64,000 bases of DNA from Auanema rhodensis (Eukaryota > Animalia > Nematoda): contig OZ059900.1 in NCBI GenBank assembly GCA_964057225.1, positions 26,412,001 through 26,476,000 on the forward strand. Direction: 5' to 3'. Position numbers and translations under genes: made by a program. The notes beneath the pieces are model-generated. The model worked only from the letters and a program-made list of their open reading frames with translations, was not told the DNA's origin and ran no database searches. This document shows, piece by piece, positions 11,654 to 58,830 of this stretch (positions are counted from its first letter, which is position 1; every line of letters starts with the position of its first letter).

Positions 11654-11903
11654 TTATACATTTAAATTTTCTGCATCTATTCATTCATTAAAGTTGTCGG
11701 GATATCCACTCCATTTTACAAATACTTGACGTTTACCGCTTCGAGTACGCTCTTTTAAACCTTTTTCTATATAGTACTTGTTACTTTTATTAGTAGCCAA
11801 GACAAGTTCAGGTTTATAGAATTTTCCCTTTATACGTTCACCATTATAATCTACAAGTTTATACACGGTTGGGTTTCCGGTTACAACCTCATCAATTGTG
11901 AAT
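11654..11903 (-). pseudogene. Integrase 3' (chromodomain) fragment, repeated at +2417, +4834 and +7251
   Basis: Nearly identical to 19933-20182, with a TGG>TGA stop and truncation at caattgtgaat. Confidence 0.9.
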
Positions 11904-31829: not shown

Positions 31830-31935
31830 TCACGGCGCGGAATGAGGTCACGGCGCGGAATGAGGTCACGGCGCGGAATGAGGTCACGGCGCGGAATGAG
31901 GTCACGGCGCGGAATGAGGTCACGGCGCGGAATGA
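31830..31935. repeat. 18-bp GC-rich tandem repeat (tcacggcgcggaatgagg, ~6 copies) at the LINE 5' junction
   Basis: Units start at 31830, 31848, 31866, 31884, 31902 and 31920. Confidence 0.95.
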
Positions 31936-33416: not shown

Positions 33417-33623
33417 TGTACCTTGATATAATGAATACATCAGTCTACACATTGCTGTTGGCATTGTAATTTGTTATGTAACATGGATTTGGGTACAGCT
33501 GTCAAAACTAGCAGTTGCGATAAACTTTAAAATAAATAAGCATATTGAATACATCTGTTTTTATTGTCCCCGTCGGATTAATTTTTGTTATTAGTTCTTA
33601 TTAAATTAACTTTATGCGTTTCA

Positions 33624-34658: not shown

Positions 34659-37151
34659 AATCCCAAGCCCCTACAATTTTTATGTTCAATAAAGTACATT
34701 TTTGAATATCTGATGTTCACAGAATATTTCCTAAATCAAAAAACTTTCATCAATGTTGAGTGAACAGTATTTATATCCAGATACATCAGATTTGAATGTA
34801 AGCTGTGTGCATAGAACATACCAGAATCGCAAGCCCCTACAATTTTCACGTTCAATGATATACATTTTCCAAATTCTGATGTTAAGGAATTAATTCTACG
34901 TGACTAAATCAAAATATTTCCATCAAGGTAGTGAAAGATGTTTTTATATCCAGATACACCAGATTTGATTGTAAGTTGTGTGCATAGAACATACCAGAAT
35001 CGCAAGCCCCTACAATTTTCACGTTCAATGATATACATTTTCCAAATTCTGATGTTAAGGAATTAATTCTACGTGCCTAAATCAAAATACTTCCAACAAA
35101 GTTGTGAAAGATGTTTTTATATCCAGATACACCAGATTTGATTGTAAGTTGTGTGCATAGAACATACCAGAATCGCAAGCCCCTACAATTTTCACGTTCA
35201 ATGATGTACATTTTCCAAGTTCTGATGTTTAGGAATTAATTCTACGTGCCTAAATTAAAATACTTTCATCAAAGTTCTGAAAGGTGTATTTATATTTAGA
35301 TAGACCACAATTGATTGCTAGCCGTATTTACAAAAGAGACTAGAATCGCAAGCCCCTACAATTTTTATGTTCAATAATGTACATTTTTAAAATTCTGATG
35401 TTCACAGTATAGTTCTACGCGCCTAAATCAAAATATTATCATCAATGTTGAGTAAACAGTATTTATATCCAGATACATCAGATTTGATTGTAAACAGTGT
35501 GCATAGAACATACCAGAATCGCAAGCCCCTACAATTTTCACGTTCAATGATGTATATTTTCAAATTTCTGATGTTTAGGATTTAATTCTACGTGGCTAAA
35601 TTAAAATACTTCCATCAAGGTTGTGAAAGATGTTTTTATATCCAGGTACACCAGATTTGATTGTAAGTTGTGTGCATAGAACATACCAGAATCGCAAGCC
35701 CCTTCAATTCTCACGTTCAATGATATACATTTTCCAAATTCTGATGTTTAGGAATTAATTCTACGTGCCTAAATCAAAATACTTCCAACAAAGTTGTGAA
35801 AGATGTTTTTATATCCAGATACACCAGATTTGATTGTAAGTTGTGTGCATAGAACATACCAGAATCGCAAGCCCCTACAATTTTCACGTTCAATGATGTA
35901 CATTTTCCAAGTTCTGATGTTTAGGATTTAATTCTACGTGCCTAAATTAAAATACTTTCATCAAAGTTCTGAAAGGTGTATTTATATTCAGATAGACCAC
36001 AATTGATTGTAAGCTGTGTGCATAGAACACACCAGAATCGCAAGCCCCTACAATTTTCACGTTCAATGATGTACATTTTCCAAATTCTGATGTTTAGGAA
36101 TTAATTGTACGTGCCTAAATCAAAATACTTCCATCAAAGTTCTGAAAGGTGTATTTATATTCAGATAGACCACAATTGATTGCTAGCCGTATTTACAAAA
36201 GAGACTAGAATCCCAAGCCCCTACAATTTTTATGTTCAATAAAGTACATTTTCAAATATCTGATGTTCACAGAATATTTCTACGCGCCTAAATCAAAATA
36301 TTTTCATCAATGTTGAGTGAACAGTATTTATATCCAGATACATCAGATTTGATTGTAAGTTGTGTGCATAGAACATACCAGAATCGCAAGCCCCTACAAT
36401 TTTCACGTTCAATGATGTACATTTTCTAAATTTTGATGTTTAGGAATTAATTCTACGTGCCTAAATCAAAATACTTCCATCAAGATTCTGAAAGGTGTAT
36501 TCATATTTAGATAGACCACAATTGAATGCTAGCCGTATTTACAAAAGAAACTAGAATCCCAAGCCCCTACAATGTTTATAACTTAAATCAGAATACTTCA
36601 ATCAAAGTTTTGAAAGGTGTATTTATATTTAGATAGACCACAATTGATTGCTAGCCGTATTTACAAAAGAGACTAGAATCGCAAGCCCCTACAATTTTTA
36701 TGTTCAATAATGTACATTTTTAAAATTCTGATGTTCACAGTATAGTTCTACGCGCCTAAATCAAAATATTATCATCAATGTTGAGTAAACAGTATTTATA
36801 TCCAGATACATCAGATTTGATTGTAAACAGTGTGCATAGAACATACCAGAATCGCAAGCCCCTACAATTTTCACGTTCAATGATGTATATTTTCAAATTT
36901 CTGATGTTTAGGATTTAATTCTACGTGCCTAAATCAGAATACTTCCATCAAGGTTTTGAAAAGAGTATTTATATTCAAATACACCACAATTGATTGCTAG
37001 CCGTATTTACAAAAGATACTAGAATCGAAAGCCCCTCCAATTTTTCTGTTAAATGATGTACATTTTTTAAATTCTGATGTCCACAAAATAGTTCTACGTG
37101 CCTAAATCAAAATGTTTCTATCAATGTTAGGTGAAGTGTATTTATATCCAT
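34659..37151. repeat. 173-bp satellite
   Basis: Same monomer as 1-9149, resuming in phase after the Maverick. Confidence 0.96.
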
Positions 37152-37159
37152 TAATATTA

Positions 37160-37263
37160 GGTACCGGAAAAAGTAATCGACGTTTCAAATTCAAATAGTT
37201 ATTTTTTATATATTTGGCGGGATATAATAAGGTTCAAAAACGTCGATTACTTTTTCCGGTACC
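37160..37263. mobile_element. 104-bp MITE-like element, 26-bp TIRs, 8-bp TSD (Merlin-like)
   Basis: taatatta|ggtaccggaaaaagtaatcgacgttt...aaacgtcgattactttttccggtacc|taatatta. Empty site at 57547-57554. Confidence 0.8.
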
Positions 37264-37472
37264 TAATATTACTCTTCATTGCGAGTGGTAATATATTTTT
37301 TGGAAAAAAGTTTTCAAAAAACTTCATTAAAATTTATGTTTTTATTTCAAGTTATCGCTCATTTCTCATGAATTTTGTTTGTGTTCAATTTTTCCGGAAA
37401 AAAAAATAAAACAATTTTGGTTCAATATGATGGTTTATTGAAACAAAAAAGTAACAAATAAGAAAAATTAAA

Positions 37473-38325
37473 TTATGTTTTATTCGTGATGTTGTATGTT
37501 TCACTTATTATTCCTCCGACTCTGCTATTGATCAGATCTTTAATGAGTTTGAAGCTTCTTCCGTGTTGAAGTAAGAATTTTCGGATTCTGGTAACATTGC
37601 ATATTTTGAAACTCGTATATATGGATCATTTCATGAAGCAGGACACTAATCAACAATTTTCTGTCGTTAGAAAATTTATGTTCACCTTTTTTCGTTTGTG
37701 GTTGAGAACTTTCGAAAAAATGATTGCAGAACAAAGTTAAGAGAATGTGATTATTGTTTCGCACTGTTTCTGCTAGTTTCGTTGAACATCTGTGCATAAC
37801 ATTGCAATAAATCTTGATAGGGAAGCCAAATATTGATCCAGCAAAAAAGTGGAAGTCCAAGTATTTGCACATTTCTCTTATTTTGTCTTTGTCTGTGGCA
37901 TAAGTAGGGCACAGCTGTTTCTCCATGATATTAGTCATTATATCAGCAAAAGAATCGGTTGTTAGAACAGGCAATTCCAGATGTAACGAGGAATAATCGT
38001 ATACCGCAGCTCCTTCTGCCTTTTCCAACTTTTCATATTCTTCTTGCGGTAATTCTTGGAATGTTCTTTTTATCCCTGACTGACATGAAAGGACAAAGCA
38101 GATTTCGAAGACGTAAGTGCTTCTCACTTTTTTCTCCTTTGATAATTTGAAAAGAGTATTCATTCTCAATAAAAAAAACATATATTATTTGACATTAAAA
38201 TCTTACTTTTGGAATTGAGTGAGGAATGTTGTTTTTTCACTTTGATTCGACCGAGTCTCCAAGCTCTTCAAGTTGAAAATGACAAATAAGTTGAAAGCGC
38301 TACACGTATCACGCTTAATTTTCAT
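37473..38325 (-). pseudogene. SprT-like metalloprotease, frameshifted by a 26-bp deletion
   Basis: VLLHEMIH is present but the downstream QHGRSF is out of frame. The 5' exons are tentative. Confidence 0.75.
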
Positions 38326-39392
38326 TTATCATTTTGAGTAGCGGTTGTTCACGAGTTGAATGAATTTGATTTTTTTCTTCTCAGTTTGCAATTTATTATT
38401 TATATCGCATGTTTTAGGAAATGTAGCACATTATTCTAGGACCAAAAATGAAAATTTTAGAATATTTAATTTTTCATAAAAATCGAACAAAATAAATAAG
38501 TTGAGCCCGCCGCAAAACATGATAATTTTTTTTTATCTTTTTCGGGAAAACTGAATATAGTATATGATGAAACAAGAATCATGGAAATTATGGAAGAATT
38601 TTTCCAATATTTATAAATTCTGCTTTCTTTAGTTTTCAAATAATTTTCTTGAAATAATCACAAAGTTCTGCTGCACAACAGTTTTTTTAATCTACATTTT
38701 CAGATGGAAGAATTTCTTCCGCGATGAAACATGAAATATGGCCGTGATAATCAACGTCAGATCTCAGGTGTCTTCTCTCCAATTTGATATATTCAATTAT
38801 TTATAAAGTATTTATTTTCAATCAATTGTCTTAACTGCTAAAAAAGAATTATGTGATATATTCAATGGTTTATACATAACCGTGGAAAAAATTCTTTCAT
38901 TGTATTTATCTTCAAGTAATTGTTTTAACTTCCAAAAAAAAGTTTGAGATTGAATTAATTGTTCATACATAACGGTGGAAGAATTTCTTCCATAGTATTC
39001 ATTTTTAATTAATTGTTATTGCTCTAGAAAAAATTAGGTAATTTATTTAATTGTTCATATATATCATTGTTTGTTTACCTATATCGTGATGAGAACAAAA
39101 AATAATTATGGAAGAAACTTTCACGTTTTTTTTGTAAATGGAAGAAATTCTTCTACTTTTGATACAACCAAACAATTTTTCATCTAAATTAGTTCAAAAT
39201 ATACTTTTTTTTATAAATTCAATTGTTTTCATACTAGGTGTGTACAGCTCGAAAGCGAATATGAAAAAAATTTATTCAACAAATTTGCGAGAAAAATTTG
39301 AACCTGAATGATTATATTGAGATCATTTTTGTGAAAAGAATGAAATGTTAATAACTGATCATTGTAAGAAAAAAAATAAAATAATTCTAATC

Positions 39393-41420
39393 TCAGTTTA
39401 ATTCCACAAAAGGGACATCTATTATATAATTAGGATTAATTTTCAACACTGTTTCAAATGCTTTTCCTCTCCTCCATTTCGGTTGAGATTTCAATTCGGT
39501 TGCTTTGCCAATCCAATGTATTCGTCTCATGAACGCTGTCAACTGAAACCAAATGTAATTTTTAACCTTTTTGGGAACTCACTGTTATATGATCATTCCC
39601 AAACCATTGCGAAGGTTCTATGTTCGAAATAAGAAAGATATGATGGGCTTTTATGACACAACTTGAAAATTTAACGTTCAATCTGAAAAAATGGGTTTAG
39701 TAATACTATTTTTGTATTCAACACTTACCTGCAGGTACCATCATTACACATCATTAAGAGCTGTTTTCCTGTCATGTACCCACGTTGTTCGAACTGTTCA
39801 ACTTCATCAATTATAATTCCATTTTGCTTGTTATATTCTATAAATTATTTTTTTTATCGGAACAAAGTTGAAACTCACTTTCAAAATAACTAGTACAATC
39901 AGCAGATGTTGTATACACAGATCCGGCAACTTTTTCTGAAATAGTTCTTTCAAATTTGAAAATTAATTAAAAAATTTATACCGAGATACTTCTTAGCAAA
40001 ATAAGATTTGTCTGCTCCAGAATCTCCGTAGAGTATATATACTCGTACATCCTTTCTATCACATTCAGCATCGTCAACAAGGGATATTAAGTGTTTTAAT
40101 TGTGATTGATGCCGCATAGCTACATCATAACGCAATTCCATGCAGTTCTGAAAAAAATAATATTGCTCGAAAAACTTATTACTTACCGTCAACTTCCAGC
40201 TGTTTTTTTGTATTTCGGTTTCCATTATATAGAGATAATGAAGAGATATGTCGTTTATCACAGTTCCTAAAATGTTTCATATTTTTGTTAATCAGTAATA
40301 TTTTTGAAATTAAAAAACCTTGATAGCTGATGACATCTTCCGCCATTAATTTTCTCATTCTTTGAAGTTCTCTTTAACATTGAATGGGTGTCAGTTTGAT
40401 CATTGTTTCTTCTTCATTTTTGTTCACATTCACGAGATGATTGAAAAACGAGGATATCACTTTTCTTTTTGTGATAGATTCAAAATGCAAAATTATCTGA
40501 AAATAGAAAAATGGATAAGCATTCAGGAAAAGATTGTGATAACTTACATGTACTGTATTATCGCAATTTTTGGGAAAACCGCATTCAATTGCCCGTATTT
40601 TGAACGAATTGACGTTCACAACATGGTCACATTGTTGTTCTGAAAAACAGAATTTTAACCATTTTCCAAACCTGTTCATTTGTAGTGTTGTTGTGAACTG
40701 AATTAAACAGAAAACACTTATCATCACATCGAAATTTGACGGTTCCTTCGTAGCGTTTATCTACAGAAAAAGTTTTAAATATCAAGCCTAAATGTTTCAC
40801 CTCTTTAATAATTGTTTTGATTGGTGCGTTTAACCAGTCGACATTGTTCGAATTGTCAAAATCCATAAATTGTTCGTTTCCGATTAGTTTCTCCAAATAA
40901 TCTTCTTCCTCTACAACTTCTACAATATTATAGTTGTTGATTCCTGAGTGGGTTGGTGCCGATTCGCCATTTGCTGAAATTCTATCAGCGAAAAAGCTGG
41001 TAATTGCATTTCTGCAAACAATTTTCATTTCATCAATCCTATAACTACTGTCTTGATTTTGCAACATAAGTTTTTCTGAAATATTTTTATTTTTCTGTTC
41101 GTGATATAATGCGATTTCATTCATCTGAAAACAAAATTTTTACATTTTAAATTTCTTGAACACAATGCTTACTTTTTGGTTTGATGGGTTTTCCTCTAAT
41201 TCCTCTGCAACATTTTCCTCAATTGAAGTTTCGAAAAATTGTTCAGTACCAACTATTGTATTATTGAATTCAGTCTGAAATTGTAGAAACCTATGCGTAA
41301 AAATGTTTTAAAACTCACAGAATGTGATACATATTCAGCATCTTTGTCCGCTGCCCGATCTAGAAAATTATATTGAGCAGCTTGAGAAACTCCATTTATG
41401 AAGCGTCCTGTATATTCCAT
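39393..41420 (-). pseudogene. Multi-exon CRESS-Rep-like SF3 helicase gene A
   Basis: Spliced C-terminus reads VRVYILYGDSGADKSYFA...YNKQNGIIIDE...LLMMCNDGTCRLNVK...IFLISN..PSQWF...AFMRRIHW. Walker A has G>D, and the best splice model has an in-frame TAA at 40374-40376. Confidence 0.8.
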
Positions 41421-42435
41421 GTTGTGGAAAAAATGAGAGCAATGTGGTTTGTTTTAATTTTTTTTTCTTTGGCTTTCGAATTTTCTCTTTTATACCATTT
41501 ATTGAACTGTCTGTTAAGATAATGATTTATGGAAAATTGTAAATAGATTGTAAAATTGTCAAGTTTATTAATTCATAATGCATGTACGCAAACGCTTCAA
41601 AAGAATCAATTGCACCCCAAGTGTATCATGCATTTGTTTCTGACACATGTCTCATTTTAGTATGAGAGTATTTGATGTATGCCGCCACAACTCTGCTTAT
41701 AGCAATCTTTTTTGGTTTCGAGAATATTTTCTGTTTGTAGATTTTGTTGATTGAAGATGAAAACAACTGGATATTTATAAATTTTTAATATTTGCTTTTC
41801 CATAATTTATGTTTTATATTCGCTACAACAATTTCTGTTTTCATATTTGCATTTCATTTATTATTTAAAACTTTACGAATGGATATTTTTCACGAATGTA
41901 TACAAGCAAAATTCCAGTTATGAATATTTGGTTTTCCTAAATGAGAAAGACCATTTTTGAAAAAAGGCTTTTCATGGAAGAAACTCTTCCATCAATTAAT
42001 GTAATTAAATGAACTTTCGATTGGGAAAAATCTTCCATTAATTGATTGCACTGCTGTTTTGAATCATAAATAATTTTAAATAATTATCGATCTATTAGCT
42101 TTTGAGAAAATTGTTCAGATCGAAAAGTCACTTACATAAAAATTCTATGACAATCAACAAGTTTTGCCGATAAGTGACATGATATTCATTTATTATTATT
42201 GCGTTTAGCATAATCAAAAAAAGATTAAAAAATTTTGAGTTGTTCAAACTCTCTTACTGTTCATATAAGAATTTTGTTATTTGAAAAACTTTGTTTTATT
42301 ATTTTATCACGTGTTGTTAAGATGACAATGTATTCTGTTTTGTTCAGCTCTTATTTGGTATCCGTAACTTAAAATCTGTGAGTTAATTTGTATTGTTCAG
42401 TTTCAGCTTTTGACAGATTTTGTTACCGCTGCCAG

Positions 42436-44407
42436 ATGATGTCTGCTGTTTGTCCTACTTTGAGAGTATTTGAAAACATGGAAGATCGATATGTGGGTTC
42501 TGTTCAAATTATATTCAGAAATTTTTTTTCAAAATTAGGCATTAACACAGAAAAATAGCTTCGACAGAATAAGCAAGTTATTGCAATGGAATGATGGAGA
42601 CAATTTAGCTATTGTTCTTTGTAGCTCTATACTTTTAAAATACGGCAGTATACATAAAGAAGTTCTTCAAAACTTTAAAGAACTACCTGATATTTTGATG
42701 AAAATGTACATAGTGAAGGTGAGAAAAAAATTTAATTCAGAACTTAATTCTACTATTCATTCTGGAATCATTTGCAGAAAGACATTGTTTGTAACCCATT
42801 TCTCTCCAATGAAGAAAAAATCAATCTTCTCACATTTTATCTTCTCACCCTACAATTTTCACGTTCAATGATATACATTTTCCAAATTCTGATGTTTAGA
42901 AATTAATTCTACGTGCCTAAATCTAAAGATTGAAACGTTGAAAAAACTTCCAATTGATATAAGAGAAATTTTATTGTTGTGGGTGAGTGTATCTCAAACG
43001 ATTGAAAAATAATTGAAATTTTTACAGATTGTTTTGGAAACTATATGCGATTGTCCTTGTTTTAAAAAAAACAACAACATAATATTTGCTTTCTTAGAAG
43101 ACGAGCTGTTCCATTCAGAAACCATAGATAAAACGGTATAAACTAACTTAAGTCATAAAGACAGGTTTATATTTATTCCAGAATAAGCTAAATGACTTCA
43201 TTCTGCTTTTTTTCCAGCAATTGGTCGTAAGAATGTCTGAACAGAAGGTAAACATTTTTTCAAAAAATCTTATTGATGAAAACAAGACATCTTGTGTATG
43301 TGGATTACAATGGACGAAATTTGAAGACAGTTTCGCTAAATGGAAACTAGCAAGTCAACAGGAAGTCAATAATTTGAGGTCGAACTAACTTTTTTCTTTG
43401 ATAATTTTTTGCTTTTCAGAAATGGAAGATTAGTTTATGCTTGTGTCAAAACAAGATATAAATTTATGAGATGGAAAAAAGTTTTTATTCATAGTAAAAA
43501 TCGAAATAAGTCGTTCTATAAAGTGACAACCGAAAGGCATGGAATTCCAAGCAGAGACTGTATTCCTCTATGCGAATCTTGTTTGATTTATAGAATTCAT
43601 TCAGAGACCAACCTGCGGTTTGAATTTTTTTCACAAAAAATTCAAACCGCAGGTTGGTCTCTGAATGAATGTATGCAATTAAACTATCAGAATGCTACAA
43701 AACATATAAAAGAGTTCACAAAAATGATGAACGAAGCAATAAACCCGTCGAGTGATCGAGAAAAGGTTAGAGTCTATGTATTAATTGGACCTTCGAGGAC
43801 TGGAAAGAGCTACTTCGCGAAGAAATTTCTAGGAACTGAAAACACATACTTCTGCTCTGCTGATTGCACTAACTACTTCCAAGGTTTGCCAGATGTTATT
43901 TCATATTGAGCACAAAATTCAGATTATAAAAGTCAAAGGAATATAATAATCGATGAAGTTGACCAGTTTGGAAAAAAAGGATACATGTCTGGCAAACAAC
44001 TATTATTGCTCTGCAATGACGGACCTTGTCGACTCAATGTGAAATTTAGCAGTGTTCAGATCATAGCTACAAAAATATTCTTGATTTCTAACAGACCTAT
44101 CGACGAATGGTTTCCGAATGATACCATAACAGTTAAGCTAAATTACGAAACAGTTGTATTTTATTAATTGTTTTACTAACAGGAGGAAGCTTTTACAAAT
44201 CGTATACACTGGAAGGGAAAAGCCACACGACAAAGAGAACAACCACATTGGAGCCATGGAGCAGCGATGGCCGAGGTATTGCGCTATAATGAGCAGGATA
44301 TTGAAGAAGAGCCTCACGTTTTTTTTAATGTAACATACTCATGGAAAAAATATGTTCTTAGTTTAATGTTTCTGTTTGTCAATGAAAAAAATCTTGTCTG
44401 TTTCTAA
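42436..44407 (+). pseudogene. Multi-exon CRESS-Rep-like SF3 helicase gene B (5' end unresolved, one exon interrupted by a satellite fragment)
   Basis: VRVYVLIGPSRTGKSYFA (Walker A), YKSQRNIIIDE (Walker B), RLNVK (B'), IFLISN (C), PIDEWF and AFTNRIHW, joined by GT-AG introns. Confidence 0.8.
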
Positions 44408-44679
44408 ATTTATGACATAGAAAAAATTTAAAATCTTGTCTGCTCCTAAATTTATGAGATGGAAAAAAGTTTTTATTCATAGTAAAAATTGAAATAAGTC
44501 GTTCTATAAAACTGAAAGTGACAACCGAAAGGCATGGAATTCCAAGCAGAGACTGTATTTCTCTAGTTGTGTAGTCTAGTTTTATTTTTCAGTTTAAATA
44601 GTTCACCGGTAAAATGTGTACCTTCCTGAGACTTGTTCGATGTACATTTCACCTGTGAAATGTGACTACGAATGAAAAT

Positions 44680-44806
44680 CAGGTAGTTGTTTTTTTAAAA
44701 TCAAAATAAGGTAGTTGTTTTTTTAAAATCAAAATAAGGTAGTTGTTTTTTTTAAATCAAAATAAGGTAGTTGTTTTTTTTAAATCAAAATAAGGTAGCT
44801 GTTCTT
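44680..44806. repeat. ~28-bp tandem repeat (aggtagttgttttttt(a)aaatcaaaata), 4+ copies, also at +9419
   Basis: Directly visible, flanked by caccggtaaaatgtgtacct-type repeats. Confidence 0.9.
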
Positions 44807-44959
44807 TAAAGTTTAACTAATGAAATAAAGTGTTAAATAACAACATAAGTCTATTCACACTCATGAATAATAAACCTCAGTTTTAACAGTTGACCGGTAA
44901 AATGTGTACCTTTTTCATACTTGTTCGATGCACGTTTCACCGGTAAAATGTGCACCTTC

Positions 44960-46570
44960 CGCGCCTAAATCAAATATTTTCATCAAGGTTAGGTGAACAG
45001 TATTTATATCCAGATACACCAGATTTGATTGTAAGTTGTGTGCATAGAACATACCAGAATCGCAAGCCCCTACAATGTTCACGTTCAATGTTATACATTT
45101 TCCAAATTCTGATGTTTAGGAATTAATTCTACGTGCCTAAATCAAAATACTTCTATCAAAGTTTTGAAAAGTGTTTTTATATTTAGATAGACCACAATTG
45201 ATTGCTAGCCGTATTTACAAAAAAGACTAGAATCCCAAGCCCCTACAATTTTTATGTTCAATAAAGTACATTTTTAAATATCTGATGTTCACAGAATATT
45301 TCTACGCGCCTAAATCAAAATACTTCCATCAAGGTAGTGAAAGATGTTTTTATATCCAGATACACCAGATTTGATTGTAAGTTGTGTGCATAGAACATAC
45401 CAGAATCGCAAGCCTCTACAATTTTCACGTTCAATGATGTACATTTTTCAAATTCTGATGTTTAGGAATTAATTGTACGTGCCTAAATCAAAATACTTCC
45501 ATCAAAGTTCTGAAAGGTGTATTTATATTCAGATACAACAGATTTGATTGTAAGTTGTGTGCATAGAACATACCAGAATCGCAAGCCCCTACAATGTTCA
45601 CGTTCAATGATGTACACTTTCCAAATTCTGATGTTTAGGAATTAATTCTATGTGCCTAAATCAAAATACTTTCATCAAGGTTGTGAAAGATGTTTTTATA
45701 TCCAGATACACCAGATTTGATTGTAAGCTGTGCGCACAGAACATACCAGAATCGCAAGCCCCTACAATTTGCACGTTCAATGATGTACGTTTTCCAAATT
45801 CTGATGTTTAGGAATTAATTGTACGTGCCTAAATCAAAATACTTCCATCAAAGTTCTGAAAGGTGTATTTATATTCAGATAGACCACAATTGATTGCTAG
45901 CCGTATTCACAAAAGAGACTAGAATCCCAAGCCCCTACAATTTTTATGTTCAATAAAGTACATTTTTAAATATCTGATGATCACAGAATATTTCTAAGCG
46001 CCTAAATTAAAATATTTTCATCAATGTTGAGTGAACAGTATTTATATCCATATACACCAGATTTGATTATAAGTTGTGTGCATAGAACATAACAGAATCG
46101 CAAGCCCCTACAATTTTTATGTTCAATAATGTACATTTTTAAAATTCTGATGTTCACAGTATAGTTCTACGCGCCTAAATCAAAATATTATCATCAATGT
46201 TGAGTAAACAGTATTTATATCCAGATACATCAGATTTGATTGTAAACAGTGTGCATAGAACATACCAGAATCGCAAGCCCCTACAATTTTCACGTTCAAT
46301 GATATACATTTTCCAAATTCTGATGTTTAGAAATTAATTCTACGTGCCTAAATCAAAATACTTCCATCAAGGTAGTGAAAAGAGTATTTATATTCAAATA
46401 CACCACAATTGATTGCTAGCCGTATTTACAAAAGATACTAGAATCGAAAGCCCCTCCAATTTTTCTGTTAAATGATGTACATTTTTTAAATTCTGATGTC
46501 CACAAAATAGTTCTACGTGCCTAAATCAAAATGTTTCTATCAATGTTAGGTGAAGTGTATTTATATCCAT
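44960..46570. repeat. 173-bp satellite spacer
   Basis: Same monomer. Confidence 0.95.
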
Positions 46571-46578
46571 TAATATTA

Positions 46579-46682
46579 GGTACCGGAAAAAGTAATCGAC
46601 GTTTCAAATTCAAATAGTTATTTTTTATATATTTGGCGGGATATAATAAGGTTCAAAAACGTCGATTACTTTTTCCGGTACC
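46579..46682. mobile_element. 104-bp MITE-like element, duplicated with the cassette
   Basis: Copy of 37160-37263. Confidence 0.8.
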
Positions 46683-46891
46683 TAATATTACTCTTCATTG
46701 CGAGTGGTAATATATTTTTTGGAAAAAAGTTTTCAAAAAACTTCATTAAAATTTATGTTTTTATTTCAAGTTATCGCTCATTTCTCATGAATTTTGTTTG
46801 TGTTCAATTTTTCCGGAAAAAAAAATAAAACAATTTTGGTTCAATATGATGGTTTATTGAAACAAAAAAGTAACAAATAAGAAAAATTAAA

Positions 46892-47744
46892 TTATGTTTT
46901 ATTCGTGATGTTGTATGTTTCACTTATTATTCCTCCGACTCTGCTATTGATCAGATCTTTAATGAGTTTGAAGCTTCTTCCGTGTTGAAGTAAGAATTTT
47001 CGGATTCTGGTAACATTGCATATTTTGAAACTCGTATATATGGATCATTTCATGAAGCAGGACACTAATCAACAATTTTCTGTCGTTAGAAAATTTATGT
47101 TCACCTTTTTTCGTTTGTGGTTGAGAACTTTCGAAAAAATGATTGCAGAACAAAGTTAAGAGAATGTGATTATTGTTTCGCACTGTTTCTGCTAGTTTCG
47201 TTGAACATCTGTGCATAACATTGCAATAAATCTTGATAGGGAAGCCAAATATTGATCCAGCAAAAAAGTGGAAGTCCAAGTATTTGCACATTTCTCTTAT
47301 TTTGTCTTTGTCTGTGGCATAAGTAGGGCACAGCTGTTTCTCCATGATATTAGTCATTATATCAGCAAAAGAATCGGTTGTTAGAACAGGCAATTCCAGA
47401 TGTAACGAGGAATAATCGTATACCGCAGCTCCTTCTGCGTTTTCCAACTTTTCATATTCTTCTTGCGGTAATTCTTGGAATGTTCTTTTTATCCCTGACT
47501 GACATGAAAGGACAAAGCAGATTTCGAAGACGTAAGTGCTTCTCACTTTTTTCTCCTTTGATAATTTGAAAAGAGTATTCATTCTCAATAAAAAAAACAT
47601 ATATTATTTGACATTAAAATCTTACTTTTGGAATTGAGTGAGGAATGTTGTTTTTTCACTTTGATTCGACCGAGTCTCCAAGCTCTTCAAGTTGAAAATG
47701 ACAAATAAGTTGAAAGCGCTACACGTATCACGCTTAATTTTCAT
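46892..47744 (-). pseudogene. SprT-like metalloprotease, frameshifted (copy 2)
   Basis: Same deletion as copy 1. Confidence 0.75.
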
Positions 47745-48811
47745 TTATCATTTTGAGTAGCGGTTGTTCACGAGTTGAATGAATTTGATTTTTTTCTTCT
47801 CAGTTTGCAATTTATTATTTATATCGCATGTTTTAGGAAATGTAGCACATTATTCTAGGACCAAAAATGAAAATTTTAGAATATTTAATTTTTCATAAAA
47901 ATCGAACAAAATAAATAAGTTGAGCCCGCCGCAAAACATGATAATTTTTTTTTATCTTTTTCGGGAAAACTGAATATAGTATATGATGAAACAAGAATCA
48001 TGGAAATTATGGAAGAATTTTTCCAATATTTATAAATTCTGCTTTCTTTAGTTTTCAAATAATTTTCTTGAAATAATCACAAAGTTCTGCTGCACAACAG
48101 TTTTTTTAATCTACATTTTCAGATGGAAGAATTTCTTCCGCGATGAAACATGAAATATGGCCGTGATAATCAACGTCAGATCTCAGGTGTCTTCTCTCCA
48201 ATTTGATATATTCAATTATTTATAAAGTATTTATTTTCAATCAATTGTCTTAACTGCTAAAAAAGAATTATGTGATATATTCAATGGTTTATACATAACC
48301 GTGGAAAAAATTCTTTCATTGTATTTATCTTCAAGTAATTGTTTTAACTTCCAAAAAAAAGTTTGAGATTGAATTAATTGTTCATACATAACGGTGGAAG
48401 AATTTCTTCCATAGTATTCATTTTTAATTAATTGTTATTGCTCTAGAAAAAATTAGGTAATTTATTTAATTGTTCATATATATCATTGTTTGTTTACCTA
48501 TATCGTGATGAGAACAAAAAATAATTATGGAAGAAACTTTCACGTTTTTTTTGTAAATGGAAGAAATTCTTCTACTTTTGATACAACCAAACAATTTTTC
48601 ATCTAAATTAGTTCAAAATATACTTTTTTTTATAAATTCAATTGTTTTCATACTAGGTGTGTACAGCTCGAAAGCGAATATGAAAAAAATTTATTCAACA
48701 AATTTGCGAGAAAAATTTGAACCTGAATGATTATATTGAGATCATTTTTGTGAAAAGAATGAAATGTTAATAACTGATCATTGTAAGAAAAAAAATAAAA
48801 TAATTCTAATC

Positions 48812-50839
48812 TCAGTTTAATTCCACAAAAGGGACATCTATTATATAATTAGGATTAATTTTCAACACTGTTTCAAATGCTTTTCCTCTCCTCCATTTCG
48901 GTTGAGATTTCAATTCGGTTGCTTTGCCAATCCAATGTATTCGTCTCATGAACGCTGTCAACTGAAACCAAATGTAATTTTTAACCTTTTTGGGAACTCA
49001 CTGTTATATGATCATTCCCAAACCATTGCGAAGGTTCTATGTTCGAAATAAGAAAGATATGATGGGCTTTTATGACACAACTTGAAAATTTAACGTTCAA
49101 TCTGAAAAAATGGGTTTAGTAATACTATTTTTGTATTCAACACTTACCTGCAGGTACCATCATTACACATCATTAAGAGCTGTTTTCCTGTCATGTACCC
49201 ACGTTGTTCGAACTGTTCAACTTCATCAATTATAATTCCATTTTGCTTGTTATATTCTATAAATTATTTTTTTTATCGGAACAAAGTTGAAACTCACTTT
49301 CAAAATAACTAGTACAATCAGCAGATGTTGTATACACAGATCCGGCAACTTTTTCTGAAATAGTTCTTTCAAATTTGAAAATTAATTAAAAAATTTATAC
49401 CGAGATACTTCTTAGCAAAATAAGATTTGTCTGCTCCAGAATCTCCGTAGAGTATATATACTCGTACATCCTTTCTATCACATTCAGCATCGTCAACAAG
49501 GGATATTAAGTGTTTTAATTGTGATTGATGCCGCATAGCTACATCATAACGCAATTCCATGCAGTTCTGAAAAAAATAATATTGCTCGAAAAACTTATTA
49601 CTTACCGTCAACTTCCAGCTGTTTTTTTGTATTTCGGTTTCCATTATATAGAGATAATGAAGAGATATGTCGTTTATCACAGTTCCTAAAATGTTTCATA
49701 TTTTTGTTAATCAGTAATATTTTTGAAATTAAAAAACCTTGATAGCTGATGACATCTTCCGCCATTAATTTTCTCATTCTTTGAAGTTCTCTTTAACATT
49801 GAATGGGTGTCAGTTTGATCATTGTTTCTTCTTCATTTTTGTTCACATTCACGAGATGATTGAAAAACGAGGATATCACTTTTCTTTTTGTGATAGATTC
49901 AAAATGCAAAATTATCTGAAAATAGAAAAATGGATAAGCATTCAGGAAAAGATTGTGATAACTTACATGTACTGTATTATCGCAATTTTTGGGAAAACCG
50001 CATTCAATTGCCCGTATTTTGAACGAATTGACGTTCACAACATGGTCACATTGTTGTTCTGAAAAACAGAATTTTAACCATTTTCCAAACCTGTTCATTT
50101 GTAGTGTTGTTGTGAACTGAATTAAACAGAAAACACTTATCATCACATCGAAATTTGACGGTTCCTTCGTAGCGTTTATCTACAGAAAAAGTTTTAAATA
50201 TCAAGCCTAAATGTTTCACCTCTTTAATAATTGTTTTGATTGGTGCGTTTAACCAGTCGACATTGTTCGAATTGTCAAAATCCATAAATTGTTCGTTTCC
50301 GATTAGTTTCTCCAAATAATCTTCTTCCTCTACAACTTCTACAATATTATAGTTGTTGATTCCTGAGTGGGTTGGTGCCGATTCGCCATTTGCTGAAATT
50401 CTATCAGCGAAAAAGCTGGTAATTGCATTTCTGCAAACAATTTTCATTTCATCAATCCTATAACTACTGTCTTGATTTTGCAACATAAGTTTTTCTGAAA
50501 TATTTTTATTTTTCTGTTCGTGATATAATGCGATTTCATTCATCTGAAAACAAAATTTTTACATTTTAAATTTCTTGAACACAATGCTTACTTTTTGGTT
50601 TGATGGGTTTTCCTCTAATTCCTCTGCAACATTTTCCTCAATTGAAGTTTCGAAAAATTGTTCAGTACCAACTATTGTATTATTGAATTCAGTCTGAAAT
50701 TGTAGAAACCTATGCGTAAAAATGTTTTAAAACTCACAGAATGTGATACATATTCAGCATCTTTGTCCGCTGCCCGATCTAGAAAATTATATTGAGCAGC
50801 TTGAGAAACTCCATTTATGAAGCGTCCTGTATATTCCAT
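48812..50839 (-). pseudogene. CRESS-Rep-like gene A, copy 2
   Basis: Copy of 39393-41420. Confidence 0.8.
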
Positions 50840-51854
50840 GTTGTGGAAAAAATGAGAGCAATGTGGTTTGTTTTAATTTTTTTTTCTTTGGCTTTCGAAT
50901 TTTCTCTTTTATACCATTTATTGAACTGTCTGTTAAGATAATGATTTATGGAAAATTGTAAATAGATTGTAAAATTGTCAAGTTTATTAATTCATAATGC
51001 ATGTACGCAAACGCTTCAAAAGAATCAATTGCACCCCAAGTGTATCATGCATTTGTTTCTGACACATGTCTCATTTTAGTATGAGAGTATTTGATGTATG
51101 CCGCCACAACTCTGCTTATAGCAATCTTTTTTGGTTTCGAGAATATTTTCTGTTTGTAGATTTTGTTGATTGAAGATGAAAACAACTGGATATTTATAAA
51201 TTTTTAATATTTGCTTTTCCATAATTTATGTTTTATATTCGCTACAACAATTTCTGTTTTCATATTTGCATTTCATTTATTATTTAAAACTTTACGAATG
51301 GATATTTTTCACGAATGTATACAAGCAAAATTCCAGTTATGAATATTTGGTTTTCCTAAATGAGAAAGACCATTTTTGAAAAAAGGCTTTTCATGGAAGA
51401 AACTCTTCCATCAATTAATGTAATTAAATGAACTTTCGATTGGGAAAAATCTTCCATTAATTGATTGCACTGCTGTTTTGAATCATAAATAATTTTAAAT
51501 AATTATCGATCTATTAGCTTTTGAGAAAATTGTTCAGATCGAAAAGTCACTTACATAAAAATTCTATGACAATCAACAAGTTTTGCCGATAAGTGACATG
51601 ATATTCATTTATTATTATTGCGTTTAGCATAATCAAAAAAAGATTAAAAAATTTTGAGTTGTTCAAACTCTCTTACTGTTCATATAAGAATTTTGTTATT
51701 TGAAAAACTTTGTTTTATTATTTTATCACGTGTTGTTAAGATGACAATGTATTCTGTTTTGTTCAGCTCTTATTTGGTATCCGTAACTTAAAATCTGTGA
51801 GTTAATTTGTATTGTTCAGTTTCAGCTTTTGACAGATTTTGTTACCGCTGCCAG

Positions 51855-53826
51855 ATGATGTCTGCTGTTTGTCCTACTTTGAGAGTATTTGAAAACATGG
51901 AAGATCGATATGTGGGTTCTGTTCAAATTATATTCAGAAATTTTTTTTCAAAATTAGGCATTAACACAGAAAAATAGCTTCGACAGAATAAGCAAGTTAT
52001 TGCAATGGAATGATGGAGACAATTTAGCTATTGTTCTTTGTAGCTCTATACTTTTAAAATACGGCAGTATACATAAAGAAGTTCTTCAAAACTTTAAAGA
52101 ACTACCTGATATTTTGATGAAAATGTACATAGTGAAGGTGAGAAAAAAATTTAATTCAGAACTTAATTCTACTATTCATTCTGGAATCATTTGCAGAAAG
52201 ACATTGTTTGTAACCCATTTCTCTCCAATGAAGAAAAAATCAATCTTCTCACATTTTATCTTCTCACCCTACAATTTTCACGTTCAATGATATACATTTT
52301 CCAAATTCTGATGTTTAGAAATTAATTCTACGTGCCTAAATCTAAAGATTGAAACGTTGAAAAAACTTCCAATTGATATAAGAGAAATTTTATTGTTGTG
52401 GGTGAGTGTATCTCAAACGATTGAAAAATAATTGAAATTTTTACAGATTGTTTTGGAAACTATATGCGATTGTCCTTGTTTTAAAAAAAACAACAACATA
52501 ATATTTGCTTTCTTAGAAGACGAGCTGTTCCATTCAGAAACCATAGATAAAACGGTATAAACTAACTTAAGTCATAAAGACAGGTTTATATTTATTCCAG
52601 AATAAGCTAAATGACTTCATTCTGCTTTTTTTCCAGCAATTGGTCGTAAGAATGTCTGAACAGAAGGTAAACATTTTTTCAAAAAATCTTATTGATGAAA
52701 ACAAGACATCTTGTGTATGTGGATTACAATGGACGAAATTTGAAGACAGTTTCGCTAAATGGAAACTAGCAAGTCAACAGGAAGTCAATAATTTGAGGTC
52801 GAACTAACTTTTTTCTTTGATAATTTTTTGCTTTTCAGAAATGGAAGATTAGTTTATGCTTGTGTCAAAACAAGATATAAATTTATGAGATGGAAAAAAG
52901 TTTTTATTCATAGTAAAAATCGAAATAAGTCGTTCTATAAAGTGACAACCGAAAGGCATGGAATTCCAAGCAGAGACTGTATTCCTCTATGCGAATCTTG
53001 TTTGATTTATAGAATTCATTCAGAGACCAACCTGCGGTTTGAATTTTTTTCACAAAAAATTCAAACCGCAGGTTGGTCTCTGAATGAATGTATGCAATTA
53101 AACTATCAGAATGCTACAAAACATATAAAAGAGTTCACAAAAATGATGAACGAAGCAATAAACCCGTCGAGTGATCGAGAAAAGGTTAGAGTCTATGTAT
53201 TAATTGGACCTTCGAGGACTGGAAAGAGCTACTTCGCGAAGAAATTTCTAGGAACTGAAAACACATACTTCTGCTCTGCTGATTGCACTAACTACTTCCA
53301 AGGTTTGCCAGATGTTATTTCATATTGAGCACAAAATTCAGATTATAAAAGTCAAAGGAATATAATAATCGATGAAGTTGACCAGTTTGGAAAAAAAGGA
53401 TACATGTCTGGCAAACAACTATTATTGCTCTGCAATGACGGACCTTGTCGACTCAATGTGAAATTTAGCAGTGTTCAGATCATAGCTACAAAAATATTCT
53501 TGATTTCTAACAGACCTATCGACGAATGGTTTCCGAATGATACCATAACAGTTAAGCTAAATTACGAAACAGTTGTATTTTATTAATTGTTTTACTAACA
53601 GGAGGAAGCTTTTACAAATCGTATACACTGGAAGGGAAAAGCCACACGACAAAGAGAACAACCACATTGGAGCCATGGAGCAGCGATGGCCGAGGTATTG
53701 CGCTATAATGAGCAGGATATTGAAGAAGAGCCTCACGTTTTTTTTAATGTAACATACTCATGGAAAAAATATGTTCTTAGTTTAATGTTTCTGTTTGTCA
53801 ATGACAAAAATCTTGTCTGTTTCTAA
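51855..53826 (+). pseudogene. CRESS-Rep-like gene B, copy 2
   Basis: Copy of 42436-44407. Confidence 0.8.
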
Positions 53827-54378
53827 ATTTATGACATAGAAAAAATTTAAAATCTTGTCTGCTCCTAAATTTATGAGATGGAAAAAAGTTTTTATTCATA
53901 GTAAAAATTGAAATAAGTCGTTCTATAAAACTGAAAGTGACAACCGAAAGGCATGGAATTCCAAGCAGAGACTGTATTTCTCTAGTTGTGTAGTCTAGTT
54001 TTATTTTTCAGTTTAAATAGTTCACCGGTAAAATGTGTACCTTCCTGAGACTTGTTCGATGTACATTTCACCTGTGAAATGTGACTACGAATGAAAATCA
54101 GGTAGTTGTTTTTTTAAAATCAAAATAAGGTAGTTGTTTTTTTAAAATCAAAATAAGGTAGTTGTTTTTTTTAAATCAAAATAAGGTAGTTGTTTTTTTT
54201 AAATCAAAATAAGGTAGCTGTTCTTTAAAGTTTAACTAATGAAATAAAGTGTTAAATAACAACATAAGTCTATTCACACTCATGAATAATAAACCTCAGT
54301 TTTAACAGTTGACCGGTAAAATGTGTACCTTTTTCATACTTGTTCGATGCACGTTTCACCGGTAAAATGTGCACCTTC

Positions 54379-57300
54379 CGCGCCTAAATCAAATATTTTC
54401 ATCAAGGTTAGGTGAACAGTATTTATATCCAGATACACCAGATTTGATTGTAAGTTGTGTGCATAGAACATACCAGAATCGCAAGCCCCTACAATGTTCA
54501 CGTTCAATGTTATACATTTTCCAAATTCTGATGTTTAGGAATTAATTCTACGTGCCTAAATCAAAATACTTCTATCAAAGTTTTGAAAAGTGTTTTTATA
54601 TTTAGATAGACCACAATTGATTGCTAGCCGTATTTACAAAAAAGACTAGAATCCCAAGCCCCTACAATTTTTATGTTCAATAAAGTACATTTTTAAATAT
54701 CTGATGTTCACAGAATATTTCTACGCGCCTAAATCAAAATACTTCCATCAAGGTAGTGAAAGATGTTTTTATATCCAGATACACCAGATTTGATTGTAAG
54801 TTGTGTGCATAGAACATACCAGAATCGCAAGCCTCTACAATTTTCACGTTCAATGATGTACATTTTTCAAATTCTGATGTTTAGGAATTAATTGTACGTG
54901 CCTAAATCAAAATACTTCCATCAAAGTTCTGAAAGGTGTATTTATATTCAGATACAACAGATTTGATTGTAAGTTGTGTGCATAGAACATACCAGAATCG
55001 CAAGCCCCTACAATGTTCACGTTCAATGATGTACATTTTCCAAATTCTGATGTTTAGGAATTAATTCTATGTGCCTAAATCAAAATACTTTCATCAAGGT
55101 TGTGAAAGATGTTTTTATATCCAGATACACCAGATTTGATTGTAAGCTGTGCGCACAGAACATACCAGAATCGCAAGCCCCTACAATTTGCACGTTCAAT
55201 GATGTACGTTTTCCAAATTCTGATGTTTAGGAATTAATTGTACGTGCCTAAATCAAAATACTTCCATCAAAGTTCTGAAAGGTGTATTTATATTCAGATA
55301 GACCACAATTGATTGCTAGCCGTATTCACAAAAGAGACTAGAATCCCAAGCCCCTACAATTTTTATGTTCAATAAAGTACATTTTTAAATATCTGATGTT
55401 CACAGAATATTTCTACGCGCCTAAATTAAAATATTTTCATCAATGTTGAGTGAACAGTATTTATATCCATATACACCAGATTTGATTATAAGTTGTGTGC
55501 ATAGAACATAACAGAATCGCAAGCCCCTACAATTTTCACGTTCAATGATGTTCATTTTCAAATTTCTGATGTTCACAGAATATTTCTACGCGCCTAAATC
55601 AAAATACTTCCATCAAGGTAGTGAAAGATGTTTTTATATCCAGATACACCAGATTTGATTGTAAGTTGTGTGCATAGAACATACCAGAATCGCAAGCCCC
55701 TACAATTTTCACGTTCAATGATATACATTTTCCAAATTCTGATGTTTAGAAATTAATTCTACGTGCCTAAATCAAAATACTTCCATCAAGGTAGTGAAAG
55801 ATGTTTTTATATCCAGATACACCAGATTTGATTGTAAGTTGTGTGCATAGAACATACCAGAATCGCAAGCCTCTACAATTTTCACGTTCAATGATCTACA
55901 TTTTCCAAATTCTGATGTTTAGGAATTAATTGTACGTGCCTAAATCAAAATACTTCCATCAAAGTTCTGAAAGGTGTATTTATATTCAGATAGACCACAA
56001 TTGATTGCTAGCCGTATTTACAAAAGAGACTAGAATCCCAAGCCCCTACAATTTTTATGTTCAATAAAGTACATTTTTAAATATCTGATGTTCACAGAAT
56101 ATTTCTACGCGCCTAAATCAAAATATTTTCAACAATGTTGAGTGAACAGTATTTATATCCATATACACCAGATTTGATTGTAAGTTGTGTGCATAGAACA
56201 TACCAGAATCGCAAGTTCCTACAATTTTCACGTTCAATGATATACATTTTCCAAATTCTGATGTTTAGAAATTAAATCTACGTGCCTAAATCAAAATACT
56301 TCCATCAAGGTAGTGAAAGATGTTTTTATATCCAGATACACCAGATTTGATTGTAAGTTGTGTGCATAGAACATACCAGAATCGCAAGCCTCTACTATTT
56401 TCACGTTCAATGATCTACATTTTCCACATTCTGATGTTTAGGAATTAATTGTACAAGCCTAAATCAAAATACTTCCATCAAAGTTCTGAAAGGTGTATTT
56501 ATATTCAGATAGACCACAATTGATTGCTAGCCGTATTTACAAAAGAGACTAGAATCCCAAGCCCCTACAATTTTTATGTTCAATAAAGTACATTTTTAAA
56601 TATCTGATGTTCACAGAATATTTCTACGCGCCTAAATCAAAATATTTTCATCAATGTTGAGTGAACAGTATTTATATCCATATACACCAGATTTGATTGT
56701 AAGTTGTGTGCATAGAACATACCAGAATCGCAAGCCCCTACAATTTTCACGTTCAATGATATACATTTTCCAAATTCTGATGTTTAGGAATTAATTCTAC
56801 GTGCCTAAATCAAAATACTTCCATCAAGGTAGTGAAAGATGTTTTTATATCCAGATACACCAGATTTGATTAAAAGTTGTGTGCATAGAACATACCAGAA
56901 TCGCAAGCCCCTACAATTTTCACGTTCAATGATATACATTTTCCAAATTCTGATGTTTAGGAATTAATTCTACGTGCCTAAATCAAAATACTTCCATCAA
57001 GGTTGTGAAAGATGTTTTTATATCCAGATACACCAGATTTGATTGTAAGCTGTGCGCACAGAACATACCAGAATCGCAAGCCCCTACAATTTGCACGTTC
57101 AATGATGTACGTTTTCCAAATTCTGATGTTTAGGAATTAATTGTACGTGCCTAAATCAAAATACTTCCATCAAAGTTCTGAAAGGTGTATTTATATTCAG
57201 ATAGACCACAATTGATTGCTAGCCGTATTCACAAAAGAGACTAGAATCCCAAGCCCCTACAATTTTTATGTTCAATAAAGTACATTTTTAAATATCTGAT

Positions 57301-57546
57301 GTTCACAGAATATTTCTACGCGCCTAAATCAAAATATTTTCATCAATGTTGAGTGAACAGTATTTATATCCAGATACACCAGATTTGATTGTAAGTTGTG
57401 TGCACAAAAGGTACTAGAATCGAAAGCCCCTCCAATTTTTTTGTTCAATGATGTACATTTTTTAAATTCTGATGTCCACAAAATAGTTCTACGTGCCTAA
57501 ATCAAAATGTTTCTATCAATGTTAGGTGAAGTGTATATATATCCAT
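54379..57546. repeat. 173-bp satellite spacer
   Basis: Same monomer. Confidence 0.95.
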
Positions 57547-58830
57547 TAATATTACTCTTCATTGCGAGTGGTAATATATTTTTTGGAAAAAAGTTTTCAA
57601 AAACCTTCATTAAAATTTATGTTTTTGTTTCAAGTTATCGCTCATTTCTCATGAATTTTGTTTGTGTTCAATTTTTCCGGAAAAAAAATAAAACAATTTT
57701 GGTTCAATATGATGGTTTATTAAAACAAAAAAGTAACAAATAAGAAAAATTAAATTATGTTTTTTTCGTGATGTTGTATGTTTCACTTATTATTCCTCCG
57801 ACTCTGCTATTGATCAGATCTTTAATGAGTTTGAAGCTTCTTCCGTGTTGAAGTAAGAAGTTGGATGGTATTGAAATTGGTAGAATTTTCGGATTCTGGT
57901 AACATTGCATATTTTGAAACTCGTATATATGGATCATTTCATGAAGCAGGACACTAATCAACAATTTTCTGTCGTTAGAAAATTTATGTTCACCTTTTTT
58001 CGTTTGTGGTTGAGAACTTTCGAAAAAATGATTGCAGAACAAAGTTAAGAGAATGTGATTATTGTTTCGCACTGTTTCTGCTAGTTTCGTTGAACATCTG
58101 TGCATAACATTGCAATAAATCTTGATAGGGAAGCCAAATATTGATCCAGCAAAAAAGTGGAAGTCCAAGTATTTGCACATTTCTCTTATTTTGTCTTTGT
58201 CTGTGGCATAAGTAGGGCACAGCTGTTTCTCCATGATATTAGTCATTATATCAGCAAAAGAATCGGTTGTTAGAACAGGCAATTCCAGATGTAACGAGGA
58301 ATAATCGTATACCGCAGCTCCTTCTGCCTTTTCCAACTTTTCATATTCTTCTTGCGGTAATTCTTGGAATGTTCTTTTTATCCCTGACTGACATGAAAGG
58401 ACAAAGCAGATTTCGAAAACGTAAGTGCTTCTCACTTTTTTCTCCTTTGATAATTTGAAAAGAGTATTCATTCTCAATAAAAAAAACATATATTATTTGA
58501 CATTAAAATCTTACTTTTGGAATTGAGTGAGGAATGTTGTTTTTTCACTTTGATTCGACCGAGTCTCCAAGCTCTTCAAGTTGAAAATGACAAATAAGTT
58601 GAAAGCGCTACACGTATCACGCTTAATTTTCATTTATCAAACTTGAGTAGCGGTTGTTCACGAGTTGAATGAATTTGATTTTTTTCTTCTCAGTTTGCAA
58701 TTTATTATTTATATCGCATGTTTTAGGAAATGTAGCACATTATTCTAGGAAAAAAATGAAGATTTTAGAATATTTAATTTTTCATAAAAATCGAACGAAA
58801 TAGCAAGTTGAGCCCGCCGCAAAACATGAT
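57547..58830. mobile_element. Cassette copy 3, partial and more diverged, running into the 168-bp satellite
   Basis: Same left junction and SprT gene. It lacks both the 104-bp insert and the 26-bp deletion. Confidence 0.55.
57755..58633 (-). CDS. SprT-like (Spartan/GCNA-type) HEXXH zinc metalloprotease, intact
   Basis: YLDFHFFAGSI...LISVLLHEMIH...QHGRSFK..IN fits the SprT pattern. The main exon is secure, while the ATG at 58633 and two 5' introns are tentative. Confidence 0.8.

Follow-up and report, generated by a model that had tools for sequence, protein, structure and literature searches.

Endogenous circovirus-like replication protein (Rep) sequences occur in many eukaryotes, including some nematodes, and some of them are conserved and expressed (Liu et al. 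2011, PMC3198968). Two further groups of eukaryotic genomic elements encode HUH nucleases. Replitrons, found in plants, algae and protists, carry the nuclease without a helicase, have short terminal direct repeats and occur as many dispersed copies (Craig 2023, PMC10288648), and in the RepHel protein of Helitrons a two-tyrosine HUH domain is fused to a superfamily 1B (SF1B) helicase (PMC10288648). Here we describe a gene island from the nematode Auanema rhodensis, located in a stretch of 64,000 nucleotides (contig OZ059900.1 of assembly GCA_964057225.1, positions 26,412,001 to 26,476,000 of the forward strand). This whole stretch is referred to below as the window, and positions are counted from its first base. 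The island is a block of 7.8 kb, present in two complete copies and one partial copy embedded in a 173-bp satellite. It contains two predicted spliced genes, A and B, each with a C-terminal superfamily 3 (SF3) helicase half, and a SprT-like metalloprotease gene. At a probability of roughly 0.55, we read it as a set of intron-bearing, nuclease-less helicase genes derived from the Rep of a CRESS DNA virus (a virus whose circular, single-stranded genome encodes a Rep), lying in satellite heterochromatin and copied by unequal exchange.

Comparison with described systems

Rep-homologous coding sequence was found within host chromosomal DNA, the chromosomal setting being given by the satellite, a miniature inverted-repeat transposable element (MITE), a Maverick-type element and a non-long terminal repeat (non-LTR) retrotransposon that flank the block. 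As with endogenous CRESS Rep genes, this would be a Rep-type sequence of viral derivation that became fixed in the chromosome of a eukaryote. The island differs from such genes in that the helicase half alone is detectable, in having two old paralogs and many introns, and in its unrelated N-terminal exons. It is best filed with endogenous Rep-derived genes, as a helicase-only and intron-rich case in which the N-terminal exons are new.

CRESS Reps themselves, which combine the Pfam domains Viral_Rep (PF02407) and RNA_helicase (PF00910), share their order of SF3 motifs with A and B, and two of the island exons are collinear with Rep positions 155-193 and 197-258. Unlike CRESS viruses, the island has no detectable HUH domain, capsid gene, origin stem-loop or small circular genome, and its genes are spliced and chromosomal. 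Like the island, Replitrons form a lineage in eukaryotic genomes, have introns in their genes and are distantly related to CRESS Reps. They are otherwise its mirror image, since the island has a helicase without a detected nuclease and its copies are local alone. Membership of the Replitrons, which have a Y1 HUH transposase without a fused helicase, was rejected because a helicase is present and no HUH domain was detected. A eukaryotic rolling-circle type of element, such as the Helitrons, had been proposed for the island in an initial reading of its sequence, but neither a Y2 HUH domain nor an SF1B helicase is present in the island; no such family matched any of the 84 open pieces of the repeat unit and the helicase is of the SF3 type, so that this membership was also rejected. 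Nor did these 84 pieces contain a transposase, integrase, capsid or polymerase of the island's own, as in an autonomous DNA transposon or virus.

Structure and paralogy of the helicase genes

Genes A and B are arranged head to head, and both recur in the second copy of the block. The predicted gene features are as follows.

39393..41307, minus strand, gene A, with a provisional 5' end; N-terminal exons of no known kind and a C-terminal SF3 helicase, with canonical introns
39983-40147, 39879-39935, 39729-39837, 39583-39682 and 39393-39542, minus strand, gene A helicase exons
48812-50726, minus strand, gene A in copy 2, at an offset of 9,419 bp
43013..44407, plus strand, gene B, with a provisional 5' end; short upstream exons and a C-terminal SF3 helicase with a canonical Walker A
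about 43653-43883, 43923-44131 and 44183-44407, plus strand, gene B helicase exons
52432-53826, plus strand, gene B in copy 2

Both genes are interrupted by introns of 39-52 nt that are canonical (GT..AG) and have acceptors of the ttttcag type. These introns and the mostly nematode relatives of a neighbouring retrotransposon fit a nematode host. Two intron positions are common to A and B, and further introns are private to A. Upstream of its helicase part, gene A has additional GT..AG introns in a region that takes in a 170-codon exon and extends beyond it. For gene B, several short candidate exons lie between a fragment of satellite inside the block and the exon that encodes Walker A. When the motifs were read directly, Walker A, Walker B, motif C and a C-terminal motif with an arginine were found in this order. 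Walker A is canonical in gene B, whereas gene A has another residue in place of the glycine that immediately precedes the lysine.

The paralogy of the two genes is limited to the helicase part (39396-40177 in A, 43622-44329 in B), where amino-acid identity ranges from 38 to 66% exon by exon; upstream of this part no likeness between A and B was found. The proportions of differences between them at codon positions 1, 2 and 3 were 0.34, 0.30 and 0.59, and different codons are used at 41 of the 78 residues that are identical in the two. The excess at third positions, together with the differing codons at identical residues, implies that A and B, which split long ago, have both been maintained as coding sequence ever since. 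Judged by these substitution patterns, A and B appear to be anciently diverged paralogs under protein-level constraint and not recent copies of an element.

Affinity of the helicases to CRESS Reps

For the central helicase exon, a profile in which the A and B exons formed separate rows was run against 1.84 billion proteins. It gave three matches at E<=0.001, none of them below 1e-10, and one of the three was a repeat artefact. The two real matches (E 3.5e-4 and 7.9e-4) were proteins of 293-298 aa with Pfam Viral_Rep and RNA_helicase domains, encoded on contigs of 1.1-1.6 kb. When these two Reps were in turn compared with the block by tblastn, the gene B exon was recovered at 40% identity over 65 residues. 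Profile comparison with hhalign placed the central exon against Rep positions 197-258 with 98% probability and the Walker-A exon against positions 155-193, immediately upstream and collinear, with an E value of 2.6e-4; the last helicase exon had no significant match to the Rep alignment by the same kind of comparison. A search of the PDB with a single gene B exon matched solely circovirus-type Rep helicase domains, with E values of 0.03-0.08.

RNA_helicase was missed in Pfam searches with single exons, since the Walker A and Walker B motifs are divided between exons. No match to a primase-helicase or any other SF3 family was obtained for the helicase exons. Assignment of the helicases to the CRESS Rep SF3 type is supported by these comparisons of predicted exons, and the family they form is very isolated, with no close relative in about 15 billion proteins. 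An initial reading of the same DNA from its letters alone (the first-pass annotation) had described two divergent spliced genes with the full SF3 motif order, in a layout characteristic of CRESS Reps. The introns, the paralogy and the motifs agree with the first part of that description, and the second is borne out by the hhalign result and by the two Viral_Rep plus RNA_helicase proteins, which are the sole relatives library-wide.

Search for a nuclease and other element genes

The presence or absence of an HUH nuclease was assessed from the upstream parts of both genes and from the repeat unit as a whole. Residues 1-100 of the two related Reps matched nothing in the block by tblastn, which found the helicase exons alone. 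Pfam searches returned no Rep or HUH family in 64 upstream open pieces, nor in the 84 open pieces of the whole unit, and when the five main upstream pieces were set against the Rep alignment with hhalign, probabilities stayed below 1%. A protein collection search with the 170-aa upstream exon of gene A found nothing, and an AlphaFold2 single-exon model of the longest upstream exon of A was unusable, with a predicted local distance difference test score (pLDDT) of 45.

No capsid, integrase, transposase, polymerase or packaging family was found among the 84 open pieces of the unit, each of at least 38 aa, in agreement with the earlier remark that no capsid or DDE transposase gene could be seen. 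The larger claim of the first-pass annotation, that the block is a Rep-based rolling-circle element carrying a protease to clear its own adducts, was not supported: no HUH domain emerged in four tests, and the copies are segmental, as described below. With no HUH domain there would be no covalent adduct for a protease to clear, and the reason that had been offered for the protease falls with it.

Duplication of the island

Comparison of the window with itself aligned 37100-46569 to 46519-55988 without gaps at 99.2% identity, which sets the period at exactly 9,419 bp. The copies and the spacer between them are as follows.

37151..44959, unstranded, non-satellite block copy 1, 7.8 kb; bounded on both sides by the 173-bp satellite, at phases 40 and 160
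44960..46569, unstranded, 173-bp satellite spacer duplicated with the block; 72 differences from 54379-55988
46570..54378, unstranded, non-satellite block copy 2, offset by exactly 9,419 bp; 2 differences in 7,812 columns
57546..58840, unstranded, older partial copy 3, with the same left junction and continuous at its end with a 168-bp satellite array; 96.5% identity to 37264-38533

Between the non-satellite parts of copies 1 and 2 (37151-44962 and 46570-54381), only 2 of 7,812 columns differ. Both differences are amino-acid changes, one in the SprT-like piece and the other in the last exon of gene B. The satellite duplicated alongside the block (44960-46569 and 54379-55988, 1.6 kb) is unlike at 72 positions, and the alignment of the partial copy 3 (57547-58840) contains 5 gap openings. 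The repeated 7.8-kb block, its 9419-bp period and the older partial third copy, all noted in the initial reading, are thus confirmed by alignment.

The satellite copied with the island is 4.5% divergent, compared with 0.03% for the island itself. Either fast satellite turnover or gene conversion homogenising the islands could account for this disparity.

One and the same satellite junction base was found in all three copies. Identity between the final satellite monomers that precede copies 3 and 2 is 97%, compared with the 80-85% that is typical of monomers within the arrays. To the left of the block the satellite ends at monomer phase 40, and to the right it resumes at phase 160; this jump implies that the block is no simple insertion into a monomer, and a clean insertion into the satellite was ruled out because of the discontinuous phase. 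No element termini or origin-like structure of the block were seen, and the right junction has no counterpart of the left one. Every copy of the block within the window is a local duplicate. The common junction, with flanking satellite copied along, indicates that the copies are local segmental duplicates rather than independent insertions. The first-pass annotation had named, as one outcome that would speak against an element, a single local segmental duplication of three genes that never co-occur elsewhere. The duplication is segmental insofar as all copies share the junction and carry satellite with them, and apart from the two Reps the searches made here turned up no relative of any of the three genes. 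The pattern is that expected of unequal exchange between satellite arrays, which is the best reading of how the tandem copies arose.

The SprT-like gene

The protease-like gene lies near the left edge of the block in all three copies.

37473..38181, minus strand, SprT-like metalloprotease gene copy 1, broken by a single frameshifting indel when compared with copy 3; sub-cutoff match to Pfam SprT-like (E 0.0013)
46892-47600, minus strand, SprT-like gene copy 2, with the same frameshift
57755..58489, minus strand, SprT-like gene copy 3, an uninterrupted open reading frame (ORF) of 244 aa with HExxH and HG..F in one frame

Against the Pfam SprT-like family (PF10263), which has a cutoff of 25.6 bits, the copy-3 ORF scored 22.2 bits (E 1.4e-4) and the copy-1 piece 19 bits. 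The aligned profile positions, 56-99 of 108, take in both HExxH and HG..F. In copies 1 and 2 these two motifs lie in different frames, with one frameshift relative to copy 3 and no stops counted. No relatives by sequence were found in the PDB, the protein collection or metagenome contigs, and a single-sequence AlphaFold2 model (pLDDT 36) was too poor for a fold search.

The protein resembles the SprT/Spartan/Wss1-type DNA-protein crosslink proteases (PF10263) in having HExxH followed by HG..F. It differs from them in its match below the cutoff, its small size, the lack of any other recognisable domain and the lack of a sequence relative in the PDB or protein collections. The HEXXH...HG..F protease of the initial reading therefore stands as far as its motifs are concerned, which are present, but these share a frame in copy 3 alone, the family score is sub-threshold and copies 1 and 2 of the gene are frameshifted. 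It is tied to the helicases by mere adjacency.

Repeats within the island

Several small repeats were located within the block.

37160..37263, unstranded, MITE, a small terminal-inverted-repeat element of 104 bp with perfect 34-nt inverted arms; filled and empty sites read directly
38418..38533, unstranded, 116 bp corresponding to two-thirds of a 168-bp satellite monomer; 92-94% identity to monomers of the array 58727-64000
42848..42931, plus strand, 173-bp satellite fragment of 84 nt, covering monomer phases 96 to 6; aligned with a score of 142, where shuffled sequences reached at most 32
43459..43570, plus strand, direct repeat of ~112 nt, paired with 44447-44565 at 98% identity, one on each side of the gene B helicase exons
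43595..43670, unstranded, perfect hairpin with a 36-nt stem, immediately upstream of the Walker-A exon in gene B; folding energy as DNA -43 kcal/mol, z -15.5

Copies 1 and 2 carry the MITE at the left edge of the block, where its 8-bp target is duplicated (37152-37159 and 37264-37271). With its target duplications it spans 37152-37271, and 46571-46690 in copy 2, and the empty site is seen in copy 3 at 57547-57554. These filled and empty sites give an order of events in which copy 3 split off, the MITE inserted and copies 1 and 2 were then duplicated. The perfect 34-nt inverted repeat had been a candidate for an origin or terminal hairpin, and was rejected because it is the MITE, with an empty site in copy 3.

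The 84-nt satellite fragment lies between genes A and B, in the same orientation as the flanking arrays. The direct repeats around the gene B helicase exons are spaced about 990 bp apart; they and the 36-nt hairpin look like small inserted repeats. Each monomer of the 168-bp array at 58727-64000 shares 116 bp with the single-copy island stretch 38418-38533, which suggests that the 168-bp satellite grew from island sequence, or the reverse. The locus shows mutual reshaping of a gene island, two satellites and small mobile elements inside heterochromatin.

Exactly at the junction of satellite and island, the first bases of the block are the nonamer TAATATTAC, which has the form of the nonamers at CRESS origins. 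It is found at 57547-57555, and also at 37264 and 46683, and this is its sole independent occurrence in 64 kb, where 1.7 would be expected by chance. A looser form of the nonamer is not enriched in the window. No significant stem-loop was found around it, the surrounding DNA folding no better than ~5% of shuffles. Its distance to gene A is 2 kb, and to gene B 5 kb.

Origin of the island

The proposed history begins with the C-terminal SF3 helicase halves of A and B, which would descend from the replication protein of a CRESS-DNA virus. The captured genes would then have gained spliceosomal introns and been kept under protein-level constraint. From their domain content, the likely products are ring-forming ATPases or helicases that bind DNA and move along it and are unable to nick it, so that on this basis they could not start rolling-circle replication alone. 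Unequal exchange between the flanking 173-bp arrays would have carried the island along with 1.6 kb of satellite, with no part played by transposition or by activity of the island's own genes.

Several observations weigh against this history. The affinity to Reps is real but thin, based as it is on two library matches barely past the threshold, and a profile search of the PDB reaches just E 1.7. For the N-terminal parts of both genes no relatives were found, and a nuclease there may have diverged beyond recognition; all searches were made exon by exon, which lowers their sensitivity for these parts. The tandem arrangement expected of unequal exchange would also be produced if an excised circle underwent rolling-circle amplification and was then reinserted. 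A and B, moreover, are genes by prediction. The nonamer at the edge, although a post-hoc observation, is unexplained by a view of the island as host genes only.

Some of these points also favour a selfish element that moves or replicates by a Rep-type protein, with its nuclease in the unrecognised N-terminal exons and the SprT-like protease removing adducts. Such an element would fit helicases of viral derivation, an island without any ordinary host gene set among mobile elements and satellites, the presence of three copies, and the absence of relatives from large databases that is expected of something undescribed; the nonamer TAATATTAC at the start of the block and the perfect 36-nt hairpin and 112-nt direct repeats flanking the helicase part of gene B could be counted for it as well. 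We nevertheless regard it as unlikely, given that an HUH domain went undetected in four tests, that a single junction is found in all copies with satellite carried along, and that the satellite phase is discontinuous while a satellite fragment lies inside the block. The nonamer, moreover, has no significant stem-loop and the right end no counterpart to it, the protease is frameshifted in both young copies and matches its family below the cutoff, and A and B are old paralogs rather than recent copies of an element. An undescribed class of selfish DNA built round a CRESS-Rep-derived SF3 helicase, in which the N-terminal exons would provide a new or diverged cutting or binding function, the nonamer would be an origin relic and the SprT-like protein an accessory, is a speculative proposal that we hold to be rather unlikely, and the island is not supported as a new mobile element. 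The adjoining Maverick/Polinton-type element shows that such elements do target this region, and the block has no recognisable ends of its own, as would suit an internal fragment of a larger double-stranded DNA element with an SF3 helicase (e.g. polinton-like) that was stranded in satellite and then duplicated. This origin seems quite improbable when the helicase relatives are solely CRESS-type Reps, with no match to a primase-helicase or other SF3 family, when the block has no capsid, polymerase, integrase or packaging gene, and when the genes are old paralogs with many spliceosomal introns. That the near-perfect tandem duplication is an artefact, one copy having been written twice during assembly, is very improbable. 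Satellite regions are hard to assemble and just 2 of 7,812 columns differ, but the duplicated satellite stretches differ at 72 positions and the arrays are of unlike length (1.6, 2.5 and 3.2 kb). Copy 3, diverged and with an empty MITE site and indels of its own, indicates that the locus really was duplicated before.

Captured Reps are usually either whole or decayed. Here the helicase half alone survives, in two old, intron-rich sister genes with new N-terminal exons, and capture from a CRESS virus, if true, would make this a clear case of a viral motor domain rebuilt into host-style genes.

Surroundings of the island

The window is AT-rich, at about 30% G+C, and almost wholly made up of repeats. 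Scans against Rfam and for tRNAs were empty, and nothing was found by exact-product look-ups for three window ORFs or by two metagenome scans with non-viral genes. The main features outside the island are as follows.

1-9117, unstranded, 173-bp satellite
9118-34658, Maverick/Polinton-type element of ~25 kb in the 173-bp satellite, with genes at 19.9-27.5 kb
9546-19210, unstranded, 2,417-bp unit repeated four times in tandem, the copies 99.5-99.8% identical
28063-32068, non-LTR retrotransposon interrupting the Maverick-type polymerase region, with a 769-aa reverse transcriptase (RT) ORF and a 385-aa ORF1

The inverted ends of the Maverick-type element are ~1 kb long (9150-10148 and 33613-34658) and 88% identical, and its gene set comprises a chromodomain-bearing integrase, an adenovirus-type protease, a packaging-ATPase-like ORF, capsid-like ORFs and pieces of a polymerase. 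Downstream of it lies more of the 173-bp satellite, followed by the island copies and then by the 168-bp satellite up to the end of the window. The 2,417-bp repeat begins inside the left inverted end of the Maverick-type element and represents a second recent local amplification in the window. The named relatives of the retrotransposon RT are mostly from Caenorhabditis and Meloidogyne, at 30-37% identity, and its 385-aa ORF1 contains an 18-bp tandem repeat.

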